Positions 1 through 31,424 of a stretch of 35,381 bases of DNA are shown piece by piece. Within the stretch, counting starts at the first letter, position 1, and every line of letters begins with the position of its first letter. The stretch is taken from positions 1 to 35,381 of the forward strand of contig NIVC01003220.1 of NCBI GenBank assembly GCA_002269645.1, read 5' to 3'. A program made the translations under genes and the position numbers. The stretch comes from Macrostomum lignano (Eukaryota). The notes under the pieces are model-generated. The model was not told where the DNA came from and did no database searches. It was given only the letters and a program-made list of their open reading frames with translations.

Positions 1-2005
1 GCTGACCAAACAAAAAGAGATGATTGCTGCATCAAAGCTGCCGAATATGCTGCCAGTGAAGGGCCACATTGAAATCGTCAAGTTTCTCGTGCCGACAGTC
101 GCTGACCAAACAAAAGAGATGATTGCTGCATCAAAGCTGCCGATCTGCTGGCAGATGATGGGCCACATTGAAATCGTCAAGTTTCTCGTGCCGACAGTCG
201 CTGACCAAACAAAAAGAGATGATTGCTGCATCAAAGCTGCCATCTGCTGGCAGATATGGCCACATTGAAATCGTCAAGTTTCTCGTGCCGACAGTCGCTG
301 ACCAAACAAAAAGAGATGATTGCTGCATCAAAGCTGCCAAATCTGCTGCAGACGAGGGCCACATTGAAATCGTCAAGTTTCCGTGCCGACAGTCGCTGAC
401 CAAACAAAAAGAGATGATTGCTGCATCAAAGCTGCCGAAATATGCTGCAGTAAGGGCCACATTGAAATCGTCAAGTTTCTCGTGGCGACAGTCGCTGACC
501 AAACAAAAAGAGATGATTGCTGCATCAAAGCTGCCGATCTGCTGCATGAATGGCCACATTGAAATCGTCAAGTTTCTCGTGCCGACAGTCGCGACCAAAC
601 AAAAAGAGATGATTGCCGCATCAAAGCTGCCGAATCTGCTGCTTCAGAATGGTCACTTGAAATCGTCAAGTTTCTCGTGCCGACAGTCGCTGACCAAACA
701 AAAAGAGATGATTGCTGCATCAAAGCTGCCGAATCTGCTGGCAGAAGGTCACTTGAAATCGTCAAGTTTCTCGTGCCGACAGTCGCGGACCAAACAAAAA
801 GAGATGATTGCGCATCAAAGCTGCCGAATCTGCTGGCAGAAATGGTCCACTTTGAAATCGTCAAGTTTCTCGTGCCGACAGTCGCGGACCAAACAAAAAG
901 AGATGATTGCTGCATCAAAGCTGCCGAATCTGCTGCAGCAATGGCACTTTGAAATCGTCAAGTTTCTCGTGCCGACAGTCGCGACCAAACAAAAAGAGAT
1001 GATTGCTGCATCAAAGCTGCCGAATCTGCTGCAGTGAATGGCCACATTGAAATCGTCAAGTTTCTCGTGCCGACAGTCGCGACCAAACAAAAAGAGATGA
1101 TTGCTGCATCAAAGCTGCCGAAATCTGCTGCAGAAGGGCCACATTGAAATCGTCAAGTTTCTCGTGCCGACAGTCGCTGACCAAACAAAAAGAGATGATT
1201 GCTGCATCAAAGCTGCCGAAATCTGCTGGCAGATATGGCCACATTGAAATCGTCAAGTTTCTCTGCGCGACAGTCGCTGACCAAACAAAAAGAGATGATT
1301 GCCGCATCAAAGCTGCCGATATGCTGGCATAATGGCCACATTGAAATCGTCAAGTTTCTCGTGCCGACAGTCGCTGACAAACAAAAAGAGATGATTGCTG
1401 CATCAAAGCTGCCGATCTCTGCTGGCAGATGGCACTTGAAATCGTCAAGTTTCTCGTGCCGACAGTCGCGGACCAAACAAAAAGAGATGATTGCCGCATC
1501 AAAGCTGCCGAATCTGCTGGCAGAAATGGTCACTTTGAAATCGTCAAGTTTCTCGTGCGGTCGACCAAACAAAAAGAGATGATTGCTGCATCAAAGCTGC
1601 CGAATCTGCTGGCAGAATGGCACATTGAAATCGTCAAGTTTCTCGTGCCGACAGTCGCGGACCAAACAAAAAGAGATGATTGCCGCATCAAAGCTGCCGA
1701 ATCTGCTGGCAGAAATGGTCACTTTGAAATCGTCAAGTTTCTCGTGCTGACAGTCGCGACCAAACAAAAAGAGATGATTGCTGCATCAAAGCTGCCGAAT
1801 CTGCTGCAGTAATGGTCACTGAAATCGTCAAGTTTCTCGTGCCGACAGTCGCTGACCAAACAAAAAGAGATGATTGCTGCATCAAAGCTGCCGCATCTGC
1901 TGGCAGATATGCCACATGGAAATCGTCAAGTTTCTTGTGCCGACAGTCGCCGACCAAACAAAAAGAGATGATTGGTGCATCAAAGCTGCCGAATCTGCTG
2001 CAAGC
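1..2005 (+). repeat. 99-bp coding tandem repeat, about 20 units (ankyrin array)
   Basis: Unit GGCCACATTGAAATCGTCAAGTTTCTCGTGCCGACAGTCGCTGACCAAACAAAAAGAGATGATTGCTGCATCAAAGCTGCCGAATCTGCT plus about 9 variable nt recurs every ~97-100 bp. Confidence 0.95.
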
Positions 2006-2651
2006 AATGGTCTGCAGGATGTCGTCGAGTTTCTTATCTCGTTTCTCTCAAGTCCCGATCAGAGAGCGAATCTCCGTTTCCAATGCGCAGTCGCGACTTG
2101 CTCTCGTCTTCACGAAGATGTCGCTGCCTTCCTTGGCCTAGAGCCCGACTGGCTCTTCCAATCCAGCACCATCCTCAGCTTCACTGCAGCAATGGCCATC
2201 GAAGGCAGGAACTCTGTTCTCACCGACACCCTATCTCGAATGCAGCCACCTCACATCACACAGCTGCTCCGTCTCTCCATCTCTCAAAGACACGTCGCTC
2301 TTGCTGTCACAATTGCTGTCACACTGATCAATGATGAGCGAGTCAGCACACAGCATGTCGATCTCCAGAAGACAGCACTGGAGCCACTGCTCTCATGCTG
2401 GCAGCTGATGCAGGTCATCATGAGCTCATTGAGAAACTCATCGATCTCGGTGCGTCAGTGCGTGCTGAAGACAGTCAGGGTCGGACTGCTCTGTCACGAG
2501 CGTGCGAAGCCGGTCATGTGCGAGCACCAAGGCTCTGATGGACAGAGGAGCGGATGCGAGTCATCGAGACGGTCGGGGTCAGACGTGTGCGCAGGTGGCA
2601 CAGCGATTTGAGCAGCAGCAGGTGCTGCGGCTGCTTCATCCAGTGAAGCGG
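1..2651 (+). CDS. Ankyrin-repeat coding exon, 5'-incomplete, with multiple 1-nt frameshifts
   Basis: About 20 copies of a 33-aa unit (GHIEIVKFLVPTVADQTKRDDCCIKAAESAxxx), then a helical segment, then three canonical ankyrin repeats recovered by shifting frame at ~2365 and ~2523 (EDSTGATALMLAADAGHHELIEKLIDLGASVRAEDSQGRTALSRACEAGHVR|STKALMDRGADASHRDGRGQTCAQVA). Ends at a phase-0 donor CGG|GTGAGT (GT 2652-2653). Confidence 0.8.
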
Positions 2652-2911
2652 GTGAGTGAGGCAATGTTATTGCTTGTAAAAATTCTTGCAATAGAAAATG
2701 CAATTGGCAGAAGTAGAAAACAAAGGGAACAAGAAAAGAGGTGAGCCAGAAAAATGGAGAAAAAGAGAAAACAGAAAAAAGACGCAACAAGAACGCCCCA
2801 TCCGCTTTTTGAATTTTTTCTACTTCGAGAGAAACTTCTGGTGCATGACAATCTCCGACTCAACTGCTGTGAGAAGTGAGAACCCTTACTTTCCTTCCTG
2901 CATTGCAGTAG

Positions 2912-2962
2912 CCCAGAGGCCCGGCAGGCAGCCGCTCACCGCTTGGAGTCGGGCCGCCATCG
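2912..2962 (+). CDS. Putative 51-nt linker micro-exon (PRGPAGSRSPLGVGPPS)
   Basis: Preceded by a pyrimidine tract and CATTGCAGTAG, followed by TCG|GTGAGT (GT 2963-2964). It is 17 codons, phase 0/0 and stop-free. Confidence 0.4.
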
Positions 2963-3070
2963 GTGAGTCTGACCGGTTCGGCTTTCACTGCCTCATTGCA
3001 CCTTCCAACAGGCTGGCAGCTTGGGGCAGAAATTGCAGCGAAACTCGGCAGGATGAGATTGGGTTGGACT

Positions 3071-3508
3071 GAGTGCTGCAGCAGCTGCACTCTCAGCTCT
3101 CCTGCTTGAATGCCAGTCTGAGTGCTGCAGCAGCTGCACTCTCAGCTCTCCTGCTTGAGATGCCAGTCTGAGTGCTGCAGCAGCTGCACTCTCAGCTCTC
3201 CTGCTTGAGATGCCAGTCTGAGTGCTGCAGCAGCTGCACTCTCAGCTCTCCTGCTTGAGATGCCAGTCTGAGTGCTGCAGCAGCTGCACTCTCAGCTCTC
3301 CTGCTTGAGATGCCAGTCTGAGTGCTGCAGCAGCTGCACTCTCAGCTCTCCTGCTTGAGATGCCAGTCTGAGTGCTGCAGCAGCTGCACTCTCAGCTCTC
3401 CTGCTTGAGATGCCAGTCTGAGTGCTGCAGCAGCTGCACTCTCAGCTCTCCTGCTTGAGATGCCAGTCTGAGTGCTGCAGCAGCTGCACTCTCAGCTCTC
3501 CTGCTTGT
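3071..3508 (+). repeat. 50-bp tandem repeat, about 8.8 copies, at the 5' end of the cGLR exon
   Basis: Unit GAGTGCTGCAGCAGCTGCACTCTCAGCTCTCCTGCTTGAGATGCCAGTCT starts at 3071 (49-bp variant), 3120, 3170 and onward to 3470 (partial). Confidence 0.97.
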
Positions 3509-3929
3509 TCCGTCCATCCAACTCTGAGCAAATCTCTCACACGCATCTCGAATCGTTCCAGGCTCTCAGATGACTCTCAGCAAGACAGGCGTCTGAGTGA
3601 GGAGCTGCATCGACTGCTCAGCGAGGCGGGATTCACCGAGGAGAGAGCAAAGTGTCAGCAGAGACTGGCTGACTGGCTGGAAGAAGTCGCTCAAGTCCTC
3701 ACACAGGATGACAGGCAGATGACGGGCAGCTACGCAGAGGGCTGGGCCAACAGTCTGGTGCAAGTGAACGGCAGGACAGCTGCAGACTCGGACATTGACT
3801 GGACTGTGCTGGTTGCTGGGCAAGAGTTCCATCTGGAAGGTGGCTGCGACAGAGAGGGATATCGTTCCTGCCGAGACGCCACTCGGCTGCAGGTCATGGA
3901 GGGCCACGCACAGGTGGCAGTGGGAGCAG
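3467..3929 (+). CDS. Mab-21/cGAS-like receptor (cGLR) nucleotidyltransferase, N-terminal exon
   Basis: Encodes TGSYAEGW (GS at 3725-3730) and DSDIDW (acidic pair at 3791-3799), the pol-beta-fold GS...DxD signature. Ends at GCAG|GTGAGT (phase 1, GT 3930-3931). The 5' boundary is uncertain; 3467 is the CCAG|TCT acceptor in the last 50-bp unit. Confidence 0.85.
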
Positions 3930-4769
3930 GTGAGTGAGGCTGGGTTCATCATCAGAATGCTGAGATCCGCATGCAACTGGAGGCCCATTAACTTTGCTCA
4001 ACTTTAAATTTTGCAACCGAGTGGCGCATAGTCTCCAGCAGTTTCTGTGACTGCGAATGTCGGCTTGGGTGCTGAAATAAGCGGCAGGCGAAATTGAAAA
4101 GAAAACTTTGATGCCAACTGGCTGAGCCGGGCCATTGGGTTTTGAATTCACAGGCTCCGATTGCAGCAGAGTGGATGCAGCGGTGCTTGGGTGACCCACG
4201 GTAGGCGGCATGGCTCTGCTGAGGTGCTGCTGCTCTCACTTGGGAAATTTCAAACAAAATAAACCGAAGCCGCCCTGACTGCCTGATTGGTGCCTTGCTG
4301 CGGGGCACTGAGTTCTGATGATGCTTGAGCAGCTGTGCTGAGCTGCAACCTGATGAAGCCAGAGCACCTGAAGCTGAAGCTGGGTGAACTCAGTGGGTGC
4401 AGAGGCTCATGCCTCACAGGTGCACTTATTTGGCTCTTCAAGAAGCGTCGAAATTCTGTGACGTCTCACCGAGCAGCTTGTGCTGTACACTGGGCCAGAC
4501 GGAGAGCATTGCAACCCTCGCCACACAGCGAGAGGCGCCCCCCACTCTCACTGGAGTCTCTAACGCCTTTGCAGGCTAGGCAACGCCGCCCACAATGTAC
4601 ACATTTTTTATTGATATTAAATAAAAATAGCTCGTGTGTATTGATTAGTAAATGAAAATGGAGTTGCAAAAGCAAAATTCCCAACCGGCCAGGAGCAAAT
4701 CTGCAGTTTCAAACCAACCCATTTTTTTCACTCGCCACAAAGCCACTCTCCGCTCACTGCGCTTTGCAG
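3930..4769 (+). other. Phase-1 GT-AG intron of the cGLR gene (840 nt)
   Basis: Donor GTGAGT at 3930 and acceptor TTTGCAG ending at 4769. The junction G|GC rebuilds a Gly codon in frame with ORF 4652-6343. Confidence 0.85.
4198..4616. repeat. Dispersed ~420-bp repeat, copy 1 (inside the cGLR intron)
   Basis: ACGGTAGGCGGCATGGCTCTGCTGAGG...CACAATGTACACATTTT(TT)ATTGATA recurs in the same orientation at 15314-15722. Confidence 0.92.
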
Positions 4770-6343
4770 GCAGCCAACCTGCAGTGACAGCCACGGCGTG
4801 CGGTGTGCGGCCTGCACAGGACACGTGCCATGCAATCGAGTGCTGCAGCAGTTTCTGTGAGGACAGAAGTAGAAAACCGGTTCTATTCAATAACAGAGTT
4901 CACCTCGTGCGGGCGACCAGACCGAGCTCGACCAACGAGCTCAGAGTGAGCTTCAGCTTCCAAGAGAAATACATCATGGGACGGCTGAGCACAGTCCAGG
5001 GCCAGCTGTTCACACTCATCAAGTTCATCTTCAAGAGACACTTGCCGCTCACTCTGGACACACCTGGACTCAAGACCTACCATGCAAAGACACTGCTCTT
5101 TACAATGCTGGAGAAGCATGGCACAGATACCGAAACTGACGCTTGGAAGCTCCACAATCTGATCGCTCTGCTCAAGGAGTCTCTCGACTTGATGCTGAGC
5201 TTCATCGACTCGAGCAGCTCGCCCGATGAGTGCATGCCGCACTTCTTCATGCCCGACGCTCCGCTCTACTTCAAGAACGCTGGAATCGGCGGCGACTTCG
5301 ACAATACGAAGGCGAGGGTTCGAGACGGACTTTTTGAGCTGAGAAGCGACATCGGTGGAGTGGTCGAGCAGCTGAGGAGACTCGTGAGACCTCTGCAGTC
5401 AGAGAAGTTCTACTTTCACCCGTTCACTCTGCTGCCTCTGACAGCGCCGCCTGCTGTCACTGAGATCAGGGAAGGAAGTGGCTACACAGAAATGTACTAC
5501 AATTTCGCAGACGTGTACAGTATGGTGCACCAGTGTGTGAGCGAGCTGCAGTCGGAATCAAGCAAAAGATACACCCTGATGAGGCAGCTCAGTCTCCTGC
5601 ATGAGCTGCAGTGGTGCAAGTGCGCCGCCCTGTGCATGACCGCAATGGCGCATTTGAAGTTCAGAGAATCTGAGGAGGCTGAGAGACTCGCGATGGAGCT
5701 GCAGAGACATCAGGTTCAGTCAGGGTTAAAGCCACAGGGTATTCGAATTTATGAATTGCCAGCAGACTCAGACTGGGCGTGGAGGTTCTGCCTCCCCTGC
5801 GACTCTCCGCCTCGCTTCCCATTCCTTCCCGAGTTCACGCAGACTCTGTTCACAGCCAGACTGTCGCAGCCTCTCTCCTCCCACCTGTACGTGAACTTTC
5901 GCTGCCTGAGCTGGAGTCTCCAAGCTGAGCTGCTCTGCAATCGCGCACCTGCAATTAAACTGGACGATTGGAAGCGAGAGCTGGAAGAAGACCCGGACTT
6001 GGAGGAGCTGCTCACTCTGGCTCACTACAGCGACTGCCGCGAGCACGTGGAGCTCAGCTTGCAGCAGATGGAGATGATCGAGAAAGAGAGACGCGTCGTC
6101 ATGGAGACGCAGGACGAGGAGAAGATCGGCTGGGTCAGGCAGAAGCGGTGGCGAGTTTCGAACCGCAGCGGCAGCGACAGCGGCGCTCACCGCAGCAGGG
6201 AAGATGAGGAGCGGAGGCTGTGGGCGAGGGCGAGGCTGCGGCGAGACGGGGTCGACTTGGGTCGCTTCGTTGCCATGGAAACAGCAGCGGAGCAGAGAGA
6301 CAGCTGGACTCACGTCAAGCTTATTCGAATGAGACTGCAGTGA
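4770..6343 (+). CDS. cGLR/Mab-21 domain C-terminal exon plus long helical extension
   Basis: Uninterrupted frame with Mab-21 motifs QDTCHAIEC (probable third acid, D at 4820-4822), HLVRA, LRVSFSFQEKYIM, LKTYHAKTLLF, a conserved W...L...L helix region and MPHFFMP. Over 300 aa of mostly helical sequence follows. Exons 3467-3929 and 4770-6343 total 2037 nt, or 678 aa plus stop. Confidence 0.9.
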
Positions 6344-6547: not shown

Positions 6548-6855
6548 ATTGTCTGCACATGCTGTTGGATTGTCTGCACATGCTGTTGGATTGTCTGCAC
6601 ATGCTGTTGGATTGACCGCACATGCTGTTGGCTTGTCTGCACATGCTGTTGGATTGACTGCACATGCTGTTGGATTGACCGCACATGCTGTTGGCTTGTC
6701 TGCACATGCTGTTGGATTGTCTGCACATGCTGTTGGCTTGTCTGCACATGCTGTTGGATTGGCTGCACATGCTGTTGGATTGTCTGCACATGCTGTTGGA
6801 TTGTCTGCACATGCTGTTGGATTTTCTGCACAAGTTGTTGGATTGTCTGCACATC
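6548..6855. repeat. 21-bp minisatellite, about 14 copies, with a degenerate tail to ~7070
   Basis: Unit ATTGTCTGCACATGCTGTTGG with variants (ATTGACCG.., CTTGTCTG..). Confidence 0.97.
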
Positions 6856-7479: not shown

Positions 7480-7721
7480 CTGGACAGACTTGATGCAGCA
7501 GCTTGAGCTGAACTCAGAAACTGTAAGCCTCTGGCTTTGCCCGTGCAGTTTGAGAAATTTTACTGCACATGTTTCTGATATTTAAAATGTACTTTAATGG
7601 CTTAAAATATTGTGTGTACATGCTCCTGGATTCTTTAAGCAGCTGCTCTCAGAATCACCTCAATCAGTCTGCAAATTGATTTCATCATGTACTTTCATCA
7701 TGTACTCATGTACCCTGCAGA

Positions 7722-8390
7722 GACTGGCAGCCTGACAGCTCCCTAATGAACATTCAGTGACTGACAGCCTGACAGCTCCCTCATGAACATTCAGTGACTG
7801 ACAGCCTGACAGCTCCCTCATGAACATTCAGGGACTGACAGCCTGACAGCTCCCTAATGAACATTCAGTGACTGACAGCCTGACAGCTCCCTCATGAACA
7901 TTCAGTGACTGACAGCCTGACAGCTCCCTCATGAACATTCACTGACTGACAGCCTGACAGCTCCCTCATGAACATTCAGTGACTGACAGCCTGACAGCTC
8001 CCTCATGAACATTCACTGACTGACAGCCTGACAGCTCCCTCATGAACATTCACTGACTGACAGCCTGACAGCTCCCTCATGAACATTCAGTGACTGACAG
8101 CCTGACAGCTCCCTCATGAACATTCAGTGACTGACAGCCTGACAGCTCTCTCATGAACATTCAGTGACTGACAGCCTGACAGCTCCCTCATGAACATTCA
8201 GTGACTGACAGCCTGACAGCTCCCTCATGAACATTCAGTGACTGACAGCCTGACAGCTCCCTCATGAACATTCAGTGACTGACAGCCTGACAGCTCCCTC
8301 ATGAACATTCAGTGACTGACAGCCTGACAACTCCCTTATGAACTTTCAGTGACTTACAGCCTGACAGCTCTCTCATGAACATTCACTGAC
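7722..8390. repeat. 37-bp minisatellite, about 18 copies
   Basis: Unit GACTGACAGCCTGACAGCTCCCTCATGAACATTCAGT. Confidence 0.98.
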
Positions 8391-18360: not shown

Positions 18361-18640
18361 GCAATCCCGTGCGGCCTCCCCTGCCCATCTCCTCTCCTGA
18401 GTAGAGCCCTCCTCAGGCTCAACCGCAGAGACCTCAGAGCAGTTAGCATGGCCCTCTCTGGGCATGGCTGCTTCTCTCGCCACCGCTTCCTTCAGGGCCA
18501 AGTACCCGAGGAGCGGTGCCCCTTCTGCCGCTCAGGCAGTGAAAACGCCGAGCATTTTATCTGCCACTGCCCGGTGTTCACCAGGGCCAGGCTCACTCAC
18601 CTCGGGCCAAACCCGGCCCGGTTCTCTCCGACGTTTGCAG
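18361..18640 (+). mobile_element. 3' fragment of a non-LTR retrotransposon ORF2 (R1/Loa/I-group-like C-terminal zinc knuckle), 5'-truncated
   Basis: LLRLNRRDLRAVSMALSGHGCFSRHRF...CPFCRSGSENAEHFICHCPVFTRAR contains the GHG and C-x2-C-x8-H-x4-C motifs of LINE ORF2 C-termini. GC-rich sequence to ~18950 is probably its 3' UTR. Confidence 0.8.
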
Positions 18641-19360
18641 GCCCGAGAGCATCCTGCTGCTCGCCCGGTACCTCAGGGACACGGGACGAGCTGAGTTCTT
18701 CCCCACCGTCGGTGAGGAGGACCGCGCTGCAGGCGAGACCGACGGGTCCCCCTGAGCGACACCACTTCAACGGAAGTCATTGGTCGCCAGGGGCTAGCGG
18801 AATGGGCGGTCTCCTCCGCCTCCTCGCTGCATCCGCGGGACGCCCCCTGCAGCTAATTCAGGTAAGTCAATCATGCCAGTAAGGGACCCATGGCCTCATC
18901 TGCATGCGCCACTGGGGCAGCCCAGACTGCCGAGGAATGGAATTCAAGACTTCTGCTGCTGACTCTTATTCTGAAAGTGTAAAAGATTTAAAATTCCAAA
19001 TTGCTTGTAGTTCCAGCCAAGGAATGAAGATTCACAACTGCTTTCTGGTTTCAGCATCTTGCTGGAGTTCTATGTAAATCCTCATCGGTCATTTGCTCCT
19101 AGTAAATGCAGGCCAGAACTCAAAAATGCTTTTATTGAGCGACAAGACCGATAGCGGAAAATGTCCGTGACAGATTCGGCTAGTTCTGAAAAGCAGATAT
19201 TTTATATTTTATATTTTATAGCATTTTTAAATATTTATGGCTTATTAACACTACATTGATGAATTTTACAGCCTTTTTATTGACCAAGGCAGCAGATTTC
19301 GACTTGGACTTGTATCAAGAGTACGGTTGGTTCCTTTAGAACTACTAGTAAATCTAATGC

Positions 19361-23605: not shown

Positions 23606-24340
23606 ATGAGCATCAATCTCCTGACGATGTTTTTGGCTCTGGGCCTCACGCTCGGCAGTGACAACCAGCAGCTGTATGTTCTCATCAACGGGTATCTCTG
23701 CATCAACGATGAGTTTGTTGAGACCTACTCAAGCGCGCTGAACAAAGTCGGGTGCGCCGCTCTGTGCGCCCAAAACCAGCGCTGTCAGGCGTTCAGCCTG
23801 GCTGACGGTCCGTGCCAGCTGTTCGTGTTCGACAAGTGCAGCAAGTCGGTGAGGAGCTGCGGCTGCTCCAGGAGAGGCCGGGTGTTCGTCAAGCAGCGAC
23901 CGGGACTCGAGGCGGGCGCGCTGTGTCCGTCTGGCTACGGCATGGACCTGTGCGGAGTGAAGTACAGGCTGTACTCTGGCATCGGGACGTGGTGGCCGAG
24001 CAGGCAGAAGTGCGAGTCAGAGAGCGGTCTGGTCATCATGGCCGACGTGACCAGCGCTGAGGAGATGAGCCACGTGGATTCCATCTACTCGAACTACAGC
24101 TCTGGACAGTCGATCTGGCTCGGAGGCTTCCAGCCAGCAGGCAGTGCGGAGCCGGCTGGCGGCTGGTACTGGGTCGGCTGCAACACTACCGTTGACCCAA
24201 CTCTGTGGAATGCTCATCAACCAAGTGCTTCTTCGGATAATGTGATTGCAAGGTTCTGGGATGACGCCGGACTCTCTGACCTGCACGAATCTTTTGCAAC
24301 CGAGACAGTGCTGTGCGAGTGCGTGTCTCCGTTCAACTGA
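23606..24340 (+). CDS. Secreted PAN/apple-like + C-type lectin domain protein, intronless, 244 aa
   Basis: ATG at 23606 and a hydrophobic signal peptide (MSINLLTMFLALGLTLG). PAN-like CAALCAQNQRCQAFSLADGPCQL is followed by a CTLD with CPSG, C at RQKC, IWLGG, EPAGGWYW, W...QPS and a terminal LCEC. Confidence 0.88.
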   Translation: MSINLLTMFLALGLTLGSDNQQLYVLINGYLCINDEFVETYSSALNKVGCAALCAQNQRCQAFSLADGPCQLFVFDKCSKSVRSCGCSRRGRVFVKQRPGLEAGALCPSGYGMDLCGVKYRLYSGIGTWWPSRQKCESESGLVIMADVTSAEEMSHVDSIYSNYSSGQSIWLGGFQPAGSAEPAGGWYWVGCNTTVDPTLWNAHQPSASSDNVIARFWDDAGLSDLHESFATETVLCECVSPFN

Positions 24341-24824
24341 AACTCATCGGATTTCCAACAACATTCGAGAAAGACCGACAACAACCATGCACTGAAGTCG
24401 AGGTTTGAGCTTTACTCAGTCGATTTTCAACCGAGGACTGTCCTCTCAAACTTAAAAGTTTATCATATACTCGTATGCCTGAATACTCCGTTGATTTCCA
24501 TGTAGTTGATGAAATGATATTTTCTCTAAAACATTTTGTGGTCTTTATAGTTTTCGCATACGGCCTACTGTAATTGATAGATCCATTAGGTTTATGTTGT
24601 TGCTGCTTTTTCCTTAAAGTTTTTAAATTTTCGGTTCCAATATCTTTAATCATATTTACATATGGATTTTAGTTGTCTAAGACAGATGCTGACAAAACCG
24701 GAAAAGTTTGTTTTAGGCAGCAAATAATACACATACACTGAAAATAAAACCAAAAGCTCAAATAACTATCAATTTCATTTAAGGCTTTGTTCCCCTCTGG
24801 AAAATTATTGAATGTTTGTTAATT

Positions 24825-27799: not shown

Positions 27800-29430
27800 T
27801 ATTTATGTGCGTGCGCGGCCCCCACCCGGTTCTCGCCCTCCCTGCTTTCTATCTACCGCTACGAACTTTGTGCTTGTGAAACTACAACATTGGTCGAGCA
27901 TTGGTCATGCTACAAGTGGTTCAGCGAGTCGAACTACTGGTTTCAGGCCGAGCAGACGTGTCTGTCTCACCGGGCTCACCTCGCGTCTATCCAAAGTGAG
28001 CAAGAGAACCGACTGGTAGGCCGACTGTCTCACTGCAGAGACGCCTGGATCGATTTGTTCGCCACCGACCTCGATCGTCTGGCCGACCCTATAAGCTACA
28101 GGTGGACGGACAGCGGCAGCGTAGGGAGCTTCGAGAGACACAACTTCTCTCAGCTGGACAGCGTTCACAAGCCTTTGATCCGAAGTGACGGTGAGTGGTG
28201 GCTGAATCACGAGCGGCACCTGTTTTTTGCAAGTTGAGCGCCGACTCCAGCATTCTCGTCGACTGGTGGAGGTCGAGCGGCCGATGTCCTAGCGGCTGGT
28301 GGCTGCACGACAAGCAGTGCTACGTGATGCCGCAGTTTGAGGCCAACTTCCACGAGGCCAACTTCTACTGCCAGCGAAACTCGTCGCAGCTGGCGTCGGT
28401 GCTCACCCAGTCTGAGCTGGACTTTCTGAACAAGCTCAGCTTCGAAATCGACAGCTGTGAGTCGCTAGAGCTGCTCGACTCGGTGTGGCTCGGCCTCATC
28501 AAGCTGAACCCCTGCTTCCCTGACAGTGCGGGTCGCGAGCTCTGCTACCAATGGACGGACTTCTCAGAGAAACACGAAAACAAGCTGCCCGCATGGGAGA
28601 CTGGACACCCGGAAAGCGCGGACTGGACTGTGAACTGCGTCACGCTGCCAGCTGGTCGACTGCGCAGTGACAGGTGCCACAGCAGGCACAGGTTCGTGTG
28701 CAAGACGGAGGCGTCGGACAGCACCTCCCCACCACCACCACAGGTGGACGGCCTCGTGGCTGCGTTCGACTTCAGGAGGGGCCTCGACAACCTGGTGGAC
28801 CCGCACACCTTCGCCATCGAGGACCAGTTCGGGGTGGAGAGATCAGCAGAGGACGGGGCCTGATTTAGACGAAACGCAAGCGATTTTATTTATTCTAGAG
28901 AGTTTTAAAACGTCGGAGCTCCCGCGGCATTCAATGAGTCGATTTGGAACGCTGACGAATGGACCATGTTCTTGCGCATAAATCGTGGGAACAGTAGCGG
29001 AGTTGAATTACTTGCAGCGCTGTATAACAGTTCGAATCCGTGGCAGGAGCGCAGCTTCTCTGTTTACCTACATCCTTCCTCTTTGAATTTGAGTCAATTC
29101 TACTTGTCAGTTTACCAGCTCACGCCAGGAAACGGTTCTCACCTGAATCACCATCAGACTTACATCTATAATATTGGAACTGTTTGCATTGAGGCCTGGT
29201 GTGATATTCATCTGGCCATGAAGAATTTTTTATTGGATCCCGCGTTAGTTGGAGCATCGCGCGAATTTCGCTATTATAACACCAGCTGGGATGCTCCCGA
29301 GCCCGAACTGCAGCAGCTGCAACTTGGCTTTGGAATGTCATTCTATCCCGGAGTTCAACGGCACTGCGCGAGGTGCTTCGGAGTCGCCCGAAGGCAGTTG
29401 AGTGTTGACGAGGTTTGGCAGGCGATGTAG
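27800..29430 (+). pseudogene. CTLD-CTLD-LamG/ConA-like multidomain lectin gene, disrupted (1 frameshift, 2 in-frame stops, no visible 5' end)
   Basis: CTLD1 reads SCYKWF...AEQTCLSHRAHLASIQSEQEN...AWI...RWTD. A frameshift at the T6 run (28223-28228) leads to CTLD2 (CPSGW...CY...EANFYC...LASV...VWLGL...W...HPE...NCV...DRC...FVCK). The same frame continues LVAAFDF...EDGA*FRRNASDFIYSREF*NVG...DEWTMFLRIN...LQLGFG...ARRQLSVDEVWQAM*, a LamG/pentraxin-like pattern. Confidence 0.75.
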
Positions 29431-29432
29431 GC

Positions 29433-29625
29433 CTTCTGTCCCTGAGCATAAGGCTATAATTTGCGTCACTGTGCTCACACAAGTACTGCGATAACAGCAT
29501 CCGGTTGAACAGCTTCACAGCGCAGGACTGAAGACAGATGCCTCTGTGCTCCTCCAGCCTTGTGGTGCCCGGCTTCTTTGAGATAATGACGACCCAACCC
29601 GATTGGAAACTTATGGGTTTAGACA
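29433..29625 (-). mobile_element. Non-LTR retrotransposon reverse transcriptase fragment
   Basis: GWVVIISKKPGTTRLEEHRGICLQSCAVKLFNRMLL matches the non-LTR RT N-terminal subdomain pattern (ivpipKK...yRgIsL....KlfnrmL). Confidence 0.8.
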
Positions 29626-30412: not shown

Positions 30413-31424
30413 CTACAGAAGCAGCATCTCGATCTCCTTCAGCGAGTAGGAGTAGCCAAAGTTGCAACTCCAAATAACTCCCATTGCTTCAGCGCCTCCG
30501 ATGGCAGAAGATGAGTCTTTGTACTCTCCGTTCGGGTGGGTGTGGTGACAGTTGACGAACCACCAGGCTCCATTACGAATGTTTTCGCAGTTGCCAGAGC
30601 CCTTGGTGTCATGATCGGCGTCCTTCGTGCTGAACTGCATGCCGCTGTGACCCGTGAGGCTGTCGCCGATGCCGGCGCTGCCGGAGAAGCCGGACACGCT
30701 CAGCCGGTAGTTGCCGGACTCGGGACCCACGGAGAAGCTGGAGTACTCGGCCCAGTGCTCAGAGTCGTTCCACGCCTTCATCAGGATCCTCAGCTTACGA
30801 GGACCAGAAGCAGTGAGAGCGTGGAGAGAGTTCAGGCCTGGGAAGATGCGGACGTCATGGCGGTGTTTGTCATTGAAATCCGAACTGGAAAAGCAAGCGA
30901 ATGAACCAGATCTGGGATTCACTCACCGATCCAGTAGTTTCCGTCGGGTCCCTCGCCGAACTCGCTCTGGTACTGAGTCCAGATGCGGTAAAAGTCCACT
31001 GAGCCGGACACTGTGCACTGCCTGCTGTCTGCAAGGTGACAGGTGCACAGGTGTGCCAGCTTTTCTACTCTGCGTTAGCACTGACATATGTAACTGAGTG
31101 ACCTACCCACACTCTCTGAGCTCCCTTGTTCGCATTATGGCACTTCCTGCAGTGGCTCAGGCCCAGGCGACACCTGTAGTGAGCGCACAGGCCAGAGCTG
31201 GCGTTGAACGACACCAGCTGCACTGCGGAGTCGCTGCTGGCAGCATACGAGCATTCAGAGTCGCTTCAGGCTGGCAGCGACCTCACAGCCACGTAGTCGG
31301 AGAGGCTCTCGCGGCTCGACTGCCACATCTGCCCAGAGTCGGCGGCAGCTTCGGTCACGTGATGCAGCACTGCAGCCAACAGCAGCAGCAGCAGAGCGGC
31401 TTGACGAGCGGTTTAGAGCTGCAT
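30413..31424 (-). pseudogene. Signal peptide + PAN-like + N-terminally truncated fibrinogen-related domain (FReD) gene, 3 exons, two premature stops
   Basis: Exon 1 (31424-31107) reads MQL*TARQAALLLLLLAAV...LPA*SDSECSYAASSDSAVQLVSFNASSGLC...QRVW, with TAA at 31415-31413 and TGA at 31268-31266. Exon 2 (31017-30927) reads [30 protein letters not shown]. Exon 3 (30837-30413) reads GLNSLHALT...FSTKDADHD...NC...GAWWFVNCHHTHPNG...SLKEIEMLLL*. GT-AG sites and phases (0, 1) are consistent. Confidence 0.82.

Follow-up and report, generated by a model that had tools for sequence, protein, structure and literature searches.

An ankyrin-cGAS-like receptor gene copy of Macrostomum lignano with an intact receptor half and a frame-disrupted ankyrin half

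Exon map of the locus

The stretch of DNA analyzed here (the window) is the whole of contig NIVC01003220.1 of the flatworm Macrostomum lignano, 35,381 nt in length, and the gene portion under study occupies positions 1–6343 of its plus strand. An earlier reading of the bare sequence (the original prediction) had placed there a long ankyrin (ANK) exon spliced to a cGAS-like receptor (cGLR), a nucleotidyltransferase (NTase) of the Mab-21 type. Judged by homology, this portion is the 3′ part of one copy of an ANK-cGLR gene that belongs to an expanded, Macrostomum-specific family. The exon map was transferred from annotated M. lignano paralog proteins by tblastn and from three paralog loci of the Mlig_3_7 assembly (L001, L002, and L003), which were compared as DNA alignments. 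In L001, the gene of paralog P0004 comprises an ANK exon, a 72-nt intron, a micro-exon, a second intron, cGLR exon 1, a third intron, and cGLR exon 2; its ANK exon is a single open frame, and the same four-exon layout was recognized in the window (Table 1). The ANK and cGLR exons of the window are collinear on one strand, and their order, donor, micro-exon, and acceptors are those found in L001 and L003.

Table 1. Features of the ANK-cGLR gene copy at positions 1–6343 of the window
Feature	Position	Strand	Evidence
Ankyrin-type tandem array, at least 20 units, nominally 99 bp (33 aa); leaves the window at its 5′ end	1–2017	+	Tandem Repeats Finder (TRF), unit alignment
Last, non-repetitive part of the ANK exon, with degenerate helical repeats ahead of 2–3 canonical ankyrin repeats	2018–2651	+	tblastn, L001–L003 alignments, Pfam
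Intron 1, GTGAGT...CAG, donor GT at 2652–2653	2652–2908	+	Sequence; homologous 72-nt intron in L001
Micro-exon, 54 nt, phase 2/2, (G)SPEARQAAAHRLESGRH(R), linker between ANK and cGLR	2909–2962	+	Linker homology to P0003 and P0043
Intron 2 with an internal 50-bp tandem repeat; last base of the acceptor ttccag at 3561	2963–3561	+	TRF, tblastn, paralog intron
cGLR exon A: N-terminal spine helices, GS motif MTGS from 3719, metal-binding acidic pair DSDIDW from 3785; ends in phase 1	3562–3929	+	tblastn, motif columns
Intron 3, GTGAGT...TGCAG	3930–4769	+	Sequence; junction GAG/SQPAVT as in P0004 on L001
cGLR exon B: third Asp in AQDTC from 4814, Cys/His cluster CHAIECCSSFC, helical Mab-21_C lobe, C-terminal domain, low-confidence tail; stop at 6341–6343	4770–6343	+	One open frame, 563 aa

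Several elements of the originally proposed splicing were recovered at shifted positions or phases. The GT donor after 2651 is real, but it is in phase 0 only in the local frame; the homologous micro-exon requires phase 2, and the donor of the paralog in L003 reads GCG GG/GTGAGT, which is phase 2. The micro-exon, predicted as 2912–2962 in phase 0/0, also exists and ends at 2962, where GTGAGT follows directly, but its start lies at 2909 and its phase is 2/2. Read in this phase, its linker SPEARQAAAHRLESGRH matches the linkers of paralogs P0003 (SPEARQAAAHRLDFGLHR) and P0043 (SPEARQAAAHPLDSGLHR), whereas the phase 0/0 frame beginning PRGPAGS has no homolog and was rejected. The proposed acceptors 3467 and 3020 were rejected as well, with the paralogs placing the acceptor at 3562 (ttccag/G CTC TCA GAT, R-LSDD, as in R/LSDDSQQDRR). 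Position 3467 falls inside the intronic 50-bp tandem repeat (3069–3507), of which TRF counted 8.8 copies, 99% identical and free of indels, and the same repeat is present in the corresponding paralog intron (L001 6815–7154). The two-exon structure of the NTase was confirmed, since both the phase 1 junction 3929^4770 and the stop agree with the mapped paralog proteins. From the micro-exon through the stop codon all joins are in frame; joining of the ANK exon to the micro-exon in frame fails in the window sequence as written.

Because of the stop codons in the ANK exon, the frame of the micro-exon, and the acceptor at 3562, the window sequence as given does not encode the predicted continuous protein of >1500 aa. 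The segments after 2502 do chain in frame through the sites first proposed, and donor 2651 and junction 3929^4770 are real. Nevertheless, the 70 stops over the three frames of 1–2651 mean that the ANK exon of this model is refuted by the sequence itself, and its micro-exon frame and second acceptor disagree with the paralogs. An intact product spliced at 2651^2912, 2962^3467 (or ^3020), and 3929^4770 is thus almost certainly not what the locus encodes.

The prediction that the NTase lacks a convincing start of its own was upheld. No usable in-frame ATG upstream of the catalytic core was found in the micro-exon or exon A, and the first Met of exon A sits immediately before the GS motif, so an independent ATG for the NTase was rejected. 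This bears on a reading in which the locus makes two products, the cGLR being produced without ANK repeats, from a start in intron 1 or by trans-splicing as in paralog P0002, and the ANK array being independent or dead. P0002 (659 aa) indeed lacks ANK repeats, and its N terminus weakly resembles a read-through of intron 1 (window 2643–2699); an ATG at 2664 opens a short open reading frame (ORF), and spliced-leader trans-splicing is common in M. lignano (PMC5730564). However, the ORF from 2664 ends after 27 codons, a homologous donor was not found, almost every paralog model is fused to ANK, and P0002 may itself be an annotation artefact. Together with the missing ATG, these observations make separate products very improbable. 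The N terminus of P0002 and the ATG at 2664 hint either at ANK-less transcripts or at an annotation artefact.

Integrity, fold, and active site of the cGLR half

The cGLR half (3562–3929 plus 4770–6343) carries no stops or frameshifts in 1942 nt. Exon A aligned in one frame with P0001, P0003, and P0004 at 83–87% identity, and exon B aligned with P0001 at 87.6% identity over 534 aa (tblastn). The window has three private changes at the 582 positions where 13 close family members are otherwise invariant; most annotated paralogs have more, and this part gives no sign of relaxed constraint. As far as sequence comparison tells, the cGLR half is intact and conserved to the same degree as its annotated relatives.

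An AlphaFold model of the cGLR part, computed with 26 family sequences, reached a mean predicted local distance difference test score (pLDDT) of 80.4 and a predicted template modeling score (pTM) of 0.81. In a Foldseek search with this model, all matches at E ≤ 1e-3 were MAB21L1, cGAS, MB21D2, or MiD51, followed by bacterial CD-NTases; the top matches had E values from 4e-5 and target template modeling (TM) scores of 0.47–0.54, with MAB21L1 ranking first. Structure prediction, one of the checks named with the original prediction, thus returned a cGAS/MAB21L1-like fold, and the cGLR half is modeled with the bilobal Mab21/cGAS nucleotidyltransferase fold. The accompanying domain check gave a divided result: Ank models matched in Pfam, but Mab-21_C (PF20266) scored 22.6 bits on the window NTase, below the cut-off of 24.1, and the core model PF03281 gave no match. 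The Mab-21_C score of P0001 was 27.6 bits. A profile alignment against human cGAS (hhalign) covered the C-lobe only, at a probability of 28%; a sequence-only PDB search with the NTase part yielded no matches, and a profile search with the full alignment was overwhelmed by ankyrin matches. Despite the weak Pfam scores, the NTase assignment was kept because the fold search rescues it.

Human cGAS, MAB21L1, and MB21D2 (PDB 9c8n, 5eog, 7lt1) share with the window the bilobal Mab21 fold and a series of motifs, namely GS, [DE]h[DE], a third Asp, an (L/V)VP-like strand, W/LRxSFS, and YHxKT, although they are only 13–18% identical to it. The window differs in lacking a cGAS-type Zn-thumb at the equivalent position, where a CHAIECCSSFC cluster follows the third Asp instead, and in having an ANK N terminus and a long C-terminal extension, neither of which is present in the three human proteins.

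The active-site signature of CD-NTases and cGLRs is h[QT]GS - X8-20 - [DE]h[DE]h - X50-90 - h[DE]h. In the window, M54-T-G-S57 is followed after 20 residues by D78-I-D80-W and, 58 residues later, by Q-D141-T, which fits this signature. The GS, DxD, and third-Asp columns are conserved with canonical spacing in the window and in P0001–P0024. Placement of these residues draws on sequence and predicted secondary structure, and by it the predicted active-site residues D78, D80, and D141 are retained. A reading in which the third catalytic Asp is replaced by the His of VHLVRA was rejected: that strand aligns with FYLVPK of cGAS, and the third Asp is D141 in AQDTC. Farther on, ELRVSFSFQEK of the window aligns with ETWRLSFSHIEK of cGAS.

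It could still be argued that the Mab21-like domain serves as a scaffold without enzyme activity, in the manner of MAB21L1 or MiD51, rather than as a second-messenger synthase. MAB21L1 is the top structural match, the Pfam NTase-core model is without a match, the acidic residues are degenerate in some paralogs (P0025, P0035), and the recombinant M. lignano domains lie outside the 15 active enzymes reported in PMC9980059. On the other hand, the window and all its close paralogs keep the GS motif, the D-I-D, and the third Asp at canonical spacing, and Li et al. (PMC9980059) included members of the family as predicted active-site-containing cGLRs. We therefore regard a pure scaffold as improbable and read the domain as a candidate enzyme.

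The cGLR part ends in a C-terminal domain of ~270 aa (~residues 322–600 of the cGLR part; window 5735–6300) that is conserved, family-specific, and mostly helical, with the motifs FYFHPFTLLPL, DWAWRFCLPC, LYVNFRCLSWSLQAELL, and DPDLEELLTLAHYSD. Modeled separately, it reached a pLDDT of 77.5. A search of the PDB gave no significant structural neighbor, the best matches (E = 0.1) being TPR-like helical proteins.

Frame disruption in the ankyrin half

Ankyrin repeats on the plus strand, as originally predicted, are present: 33-aa repeats fill 1–2017 (TRF, Pfam), and canonical repeats lie at ~2380–2640. TRF described the array as having a period of 98/99, 20.5 copies, 92% matches, and 4% indels. 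The repeat unit is EIVKFLVPTVADQTKRDDCCIKAAESAxxNGH[IF], and a short repeat sequence, hand-idealized from in-frame units, scored 63 bits with Pfam Ank_4 and 54 bits with Ank_2; the frame-corrected unique part scored 65.8 bits with Ank_2 and 60.4 bits with Ank. In-frame arrays of the same unit type are present in P0043, P0001, and P0008.

The predicted long open ankyrin exon did not survive inspection. Consecutive units measure 99, 97, 99, 98, 97, 98, 96, 99, 97, 98, 97, 100, 97, 95, 99, 90, 99, 95, 98, and 99 nt, so that 13 of the 20 are not a multiple of 3 in length, and the EIVKFL anchor hops repeatedly among all three frames along the array. Over positions 1–2651, frame 1 holds 31 stop codons, frame 2 holds 16, and frame 3 holds 23; the longest open stretch is 292 aa, and no continuous frame for the ankyrin repeats was found there in any of the three. 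In the unique segment (2018–2651), paralog proteins align contiguously only with a frame change from 2 to 1 to 3 (tblastn). Compared with the paralogs, this segment lacks single nucleotides at four places: after positions 2366, 2526, and 2641, and within the G-run at 2650–2652 (G4 to G3, at the donor); the change after 2366 is a deletion relative to L002 only and a 2-nt insertion relative to L001 and L003, with an equal shift of frame. Across the ANK half there are ~45 single-base deletions, and most repeat units fall 1–4 nt below 99. After frame correction, the array comprises 624 complete codons without a stop, at the cost of 42 deleted and 9 inserted nt, and nonsense substitutions number 0 in ~830 frame-corrected ANK codons.

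The lesions are unevenly distributed. Columns that vary between units carry 52% of the deleted nt but make up 15% of the columns. Substitutions between units are concentrated in the last 27 nt of the unit, the AAExAxxNGH stretch, with 73 there against 19 in the first 72 nt. This segment presumably corresponds to the target-binding positions of ankyrin repeats, by comparison with designed ankyrin repeats.

Two main explanations were weighed for the broken ANK half. According to the first, the deletions of the ANK half are consensus or polishing errors, and the animal itself has an undamaged ANK-cGLR that resembles P0043; we give this about an even chance. We lean slightly toward it because the ANK region consists of tandem repeats, comes from a family with many copies, and lies at the very start of the window. 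The spectrum of the lesions supports it: almost all are single-base deletions, there is no nonsense change in the array, and the deletions cluster at columns that vary between units, just as all four deletions of the unique part fall on sites of divergence among the paralogs. Further support comes from the position of the affected stretch, which takes up the window's first 2.65 kb and starts within the array, from the pristine state of the cGLR half, and from a C-type lectin pseudogene in the same window (see below), which looks different, with two nonsense substitutions and one frameshift. Published M. lignano assemblies are based on PacBio continuous long reads and polished with Pilon, and 15% of the genome is tandem repeats, with heavy duplication (PMC5730564); these traits may by analogy bear on the window.

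According to the second explanation, which we rate somewhat below an even chance, the frameshifts are real and the locus is a recently disabled ANK-cGLR duplicate, in which the unconstrained 5′ repeat exon has undergone satellite-like expansion while the cGLR exons are still undamaged or are used in an ANK-less transcript. No frame of the ANK half is open, and comparison with three paralogs shows four independent frame-disrupting deletions, one of which removes the phase-2 context of the donor. Over their first 72 nt the units hardly differ, a pattern expected of a young satellite; the protein collection contains no product of the window locus, the best match being 87% identical; and a bona fide pseudogene lies 22 kb away. 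Against decay stands the expectation that neutral change should also strike the 1.9-kb cGLR exons, where no excess of private substitutions was found: four indels in 290 nt and none in 1942 nt have a probability of ~3e-4 if indels fall uniformly. The absence of nonsense substitutions from the frame-corrected ANK codons and the near-exclusive occurrence of 1-nt deletions argue the same way, and the confinement of between-unit variation largely to one segment fits selection better than drift.

Some observations nonetheless weigh against consensus error and an intact gene. One deletion variant, GC-GACC, is common to four units of one sub-type and looks inherited rather than random. The 50-bp array ~400 nt downstream of the ANK half is without indels, as is 2018–2365, and therefore there is no smooth gradient of noise toward the contig end; such a gradient as the sole explanation was rejected. 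The genome is neopolyploid, with massive redundancy (PMC5730564) and many decaying duplicates, and one such duplicate, the C-type lectin copy, lies in the window. As to enzyme activity, the M. lignano clones of the screen by Li et al. 2023 (entries #89–93) are not among its 15 active characterized enzymes, cGLR-01 to -15 (PMC9980059). On balance, we place assembly or consensus error slightly ahead of recent decay.

Family context, neighborhood, and significance

A database search with the conceptual protein spliced from 3467–3929 and 4770–6343 retrieved 42 proteins matching the NTase part, nearly all from M. lignano and up to 87% identical; most of them carry Ank Pfam domains together with Mab-21_C. 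The paralog search proposed with the original prediction has therefore yielded >40 M. lignano paralogs, mostly of the combined type. When the search was made exhaustive, 132 clusters at 50% identity matched the NTase part, 99 of them with E < 1e-10, and the family is therefore large and diverged. At the family level, sequence evidence supports the assignment of ankyrin repeats and a cGAS-like NTase to one gene. The fusion first proposed for this locus is in that respect sound, but its specific spliced model and intact ORF are not.

The suggestion that this architecture might be uncatalogued was superseded by the literature. Li et al. 2023 (PMC9980059) reported TPR or ankyrin-repeat modules in some cGLRs. 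PAA68676.1 (BOX15_Mlig016402g1; P0001 here), which at 87% identity is the paralog closest to the window, is listed in their Table S2 with Ank_2 matches and in their Table S3 as a cloned NTase domain, screen entry #93. Four further M. lignano cGLRs were included in the same screen (#89–93 in all), the members having been taken as predicted active-site-containing cGLRs. The ANK-cGLR architecture is thus already known, because the closest paralog belongs to that curated set, and the window locus is an additional, possibly damaged member of a catalogued family rather than a new kind of sensor. A literature search on flatworm or Macrostomum cGLR and STING returned nothing beyond Li et al. 2023.

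Among the relatives, PAA68676.1 resembles the window at 87–88% identity over the whole cGLR part, including its unusual C-terminal tail, and in its 33-aa CCIKAAE-type repeats, unique ANK segment, and exon order. It has only 3–4 units, all in frame, and another linker, whereas the window has at least 20 near-identical, frame-broken units. The best match in full architecture is P0043 (1217 aa, a cluster representative), which combines ~10 units of 33 aa in frame with the unique ANK segment, the linker GAGSPEARQAAAHPLDSGLHR, and a cGLR that is 87% identical to that of the window over all 647 residues. Its units are far more divergent among themselves, and its intact ORF begins with Met; no such start is seen in the window, because the array leaves it at the 5′ end. 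Corals (for example S. pistillata) and other invertebrates have ANK-, TPR-, and death-domain-fused cGLRs (Li et al. 2023, Fig. 1C/S2A) that combine a cGLR NTase core with repeat-type interaction domains, which have been proposed to be ligand- or protein-interacting (PMC9980059). These belong to other lineages, are not close in sequence, and lack the ~270-aa C-terminal domain of the flatworm family. Another M. lignano paralog, P0025 (BOX15_Mlig012150g1), contains a cGLR-like domain, ankyrin repeats, and a caspase domain (Peptidase_C14, 89.9 bits), in that order; its acidic catalytic residues are degenerate (DCDMNW, AESFC), and judging from its sequence it may be a non-enzymatic sensor-protease fusion.

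Features outside the gene were noted in the window and the paralog loci. Tandem repeats of 16–118 bp crowd the window (3069–3507, 6548–6854, 7718–8390, with more than 12 others as far as 32003), and a 37-bp repeat that follows the gene is found again beyond the paralog in L002 (27164–27308). Since the window shares its intronic 50-bp repeat with L001 and this 37-bp repeat with L002, the duplication extends beyond the gene. In L002, the gene model of P0001 (7581–24684) has an intron of ~17 kb between its two cGLR exons, bounded by 84-bp repeat arrays in apparently inverse orientation (7914–8132 and 24331–24549), which suggests a large inserted element or a chimeric model. A C-type lectin copy (Pfam Lectin_C) lies at 27905–29442 (+), 87–90% identical to M. 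lignano P0163. Relative to P0163, it carries a frameshift from a 1-nt deletion near 28222 and two premature stops, TGC to TGA at 28861–28863 and TAC to TAA at 28906–28908, and from its sequence it looks like a true pseudogene. An ORF at 30413–30922 (−) encodes a Fibrinogen_C domain (E = 2.4e-32), and with lectin genes, this ORF, and the cGLR, the window looks like a neighborhood of immune-type recognition genes. A 144-aa ORF at 18448–18882 (+) had no Pfam match; its Cys/His motif, CPFCRSGSENAEHFICHCPVF, brings to mind the C terminus of a retrotransposon ORF.

As a discovery the locus carries little weight, given that ANK-fused cGLRs, including the flatworm family and the closest paralog, were described in 2023. 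Its value is corrective, in that it supplies the right exon map and shows that the window sequence contains no open exon for the ankyrin half. It also serves as a warning that single-base deletions occur in repeat-rich, multi-copy regions of the M. lignano genome, where they can pass for gene decay or conceal it.

In a functional gene of this type, the ANK array would act as a protein- or ligand-recognition module or as an autoinhibitory one, and the cGLR domain, by analogy with characterized cGLRs, would synthesize a nucleotide second messenger that acts on a downstream receptor, for instance STING. If the array of the window is truly coding, which we find doubtful but conceivable, the locus would encode the longest known flatworm-specific ANK-cGLR, with at least 20 near-identical repeats that differ almost only at target-binding positions, in a family of at least 100 diverged clusters and in a phylum otherwise reported to be without immune cGLRs. 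Such a gene would point to a recognition repertoire that is built on repeats, diversifies rapidly, and feeds directly into second-messenger synthesis, in a family that also has a C-terminal domain of no known fold and caspase-fused relatives.

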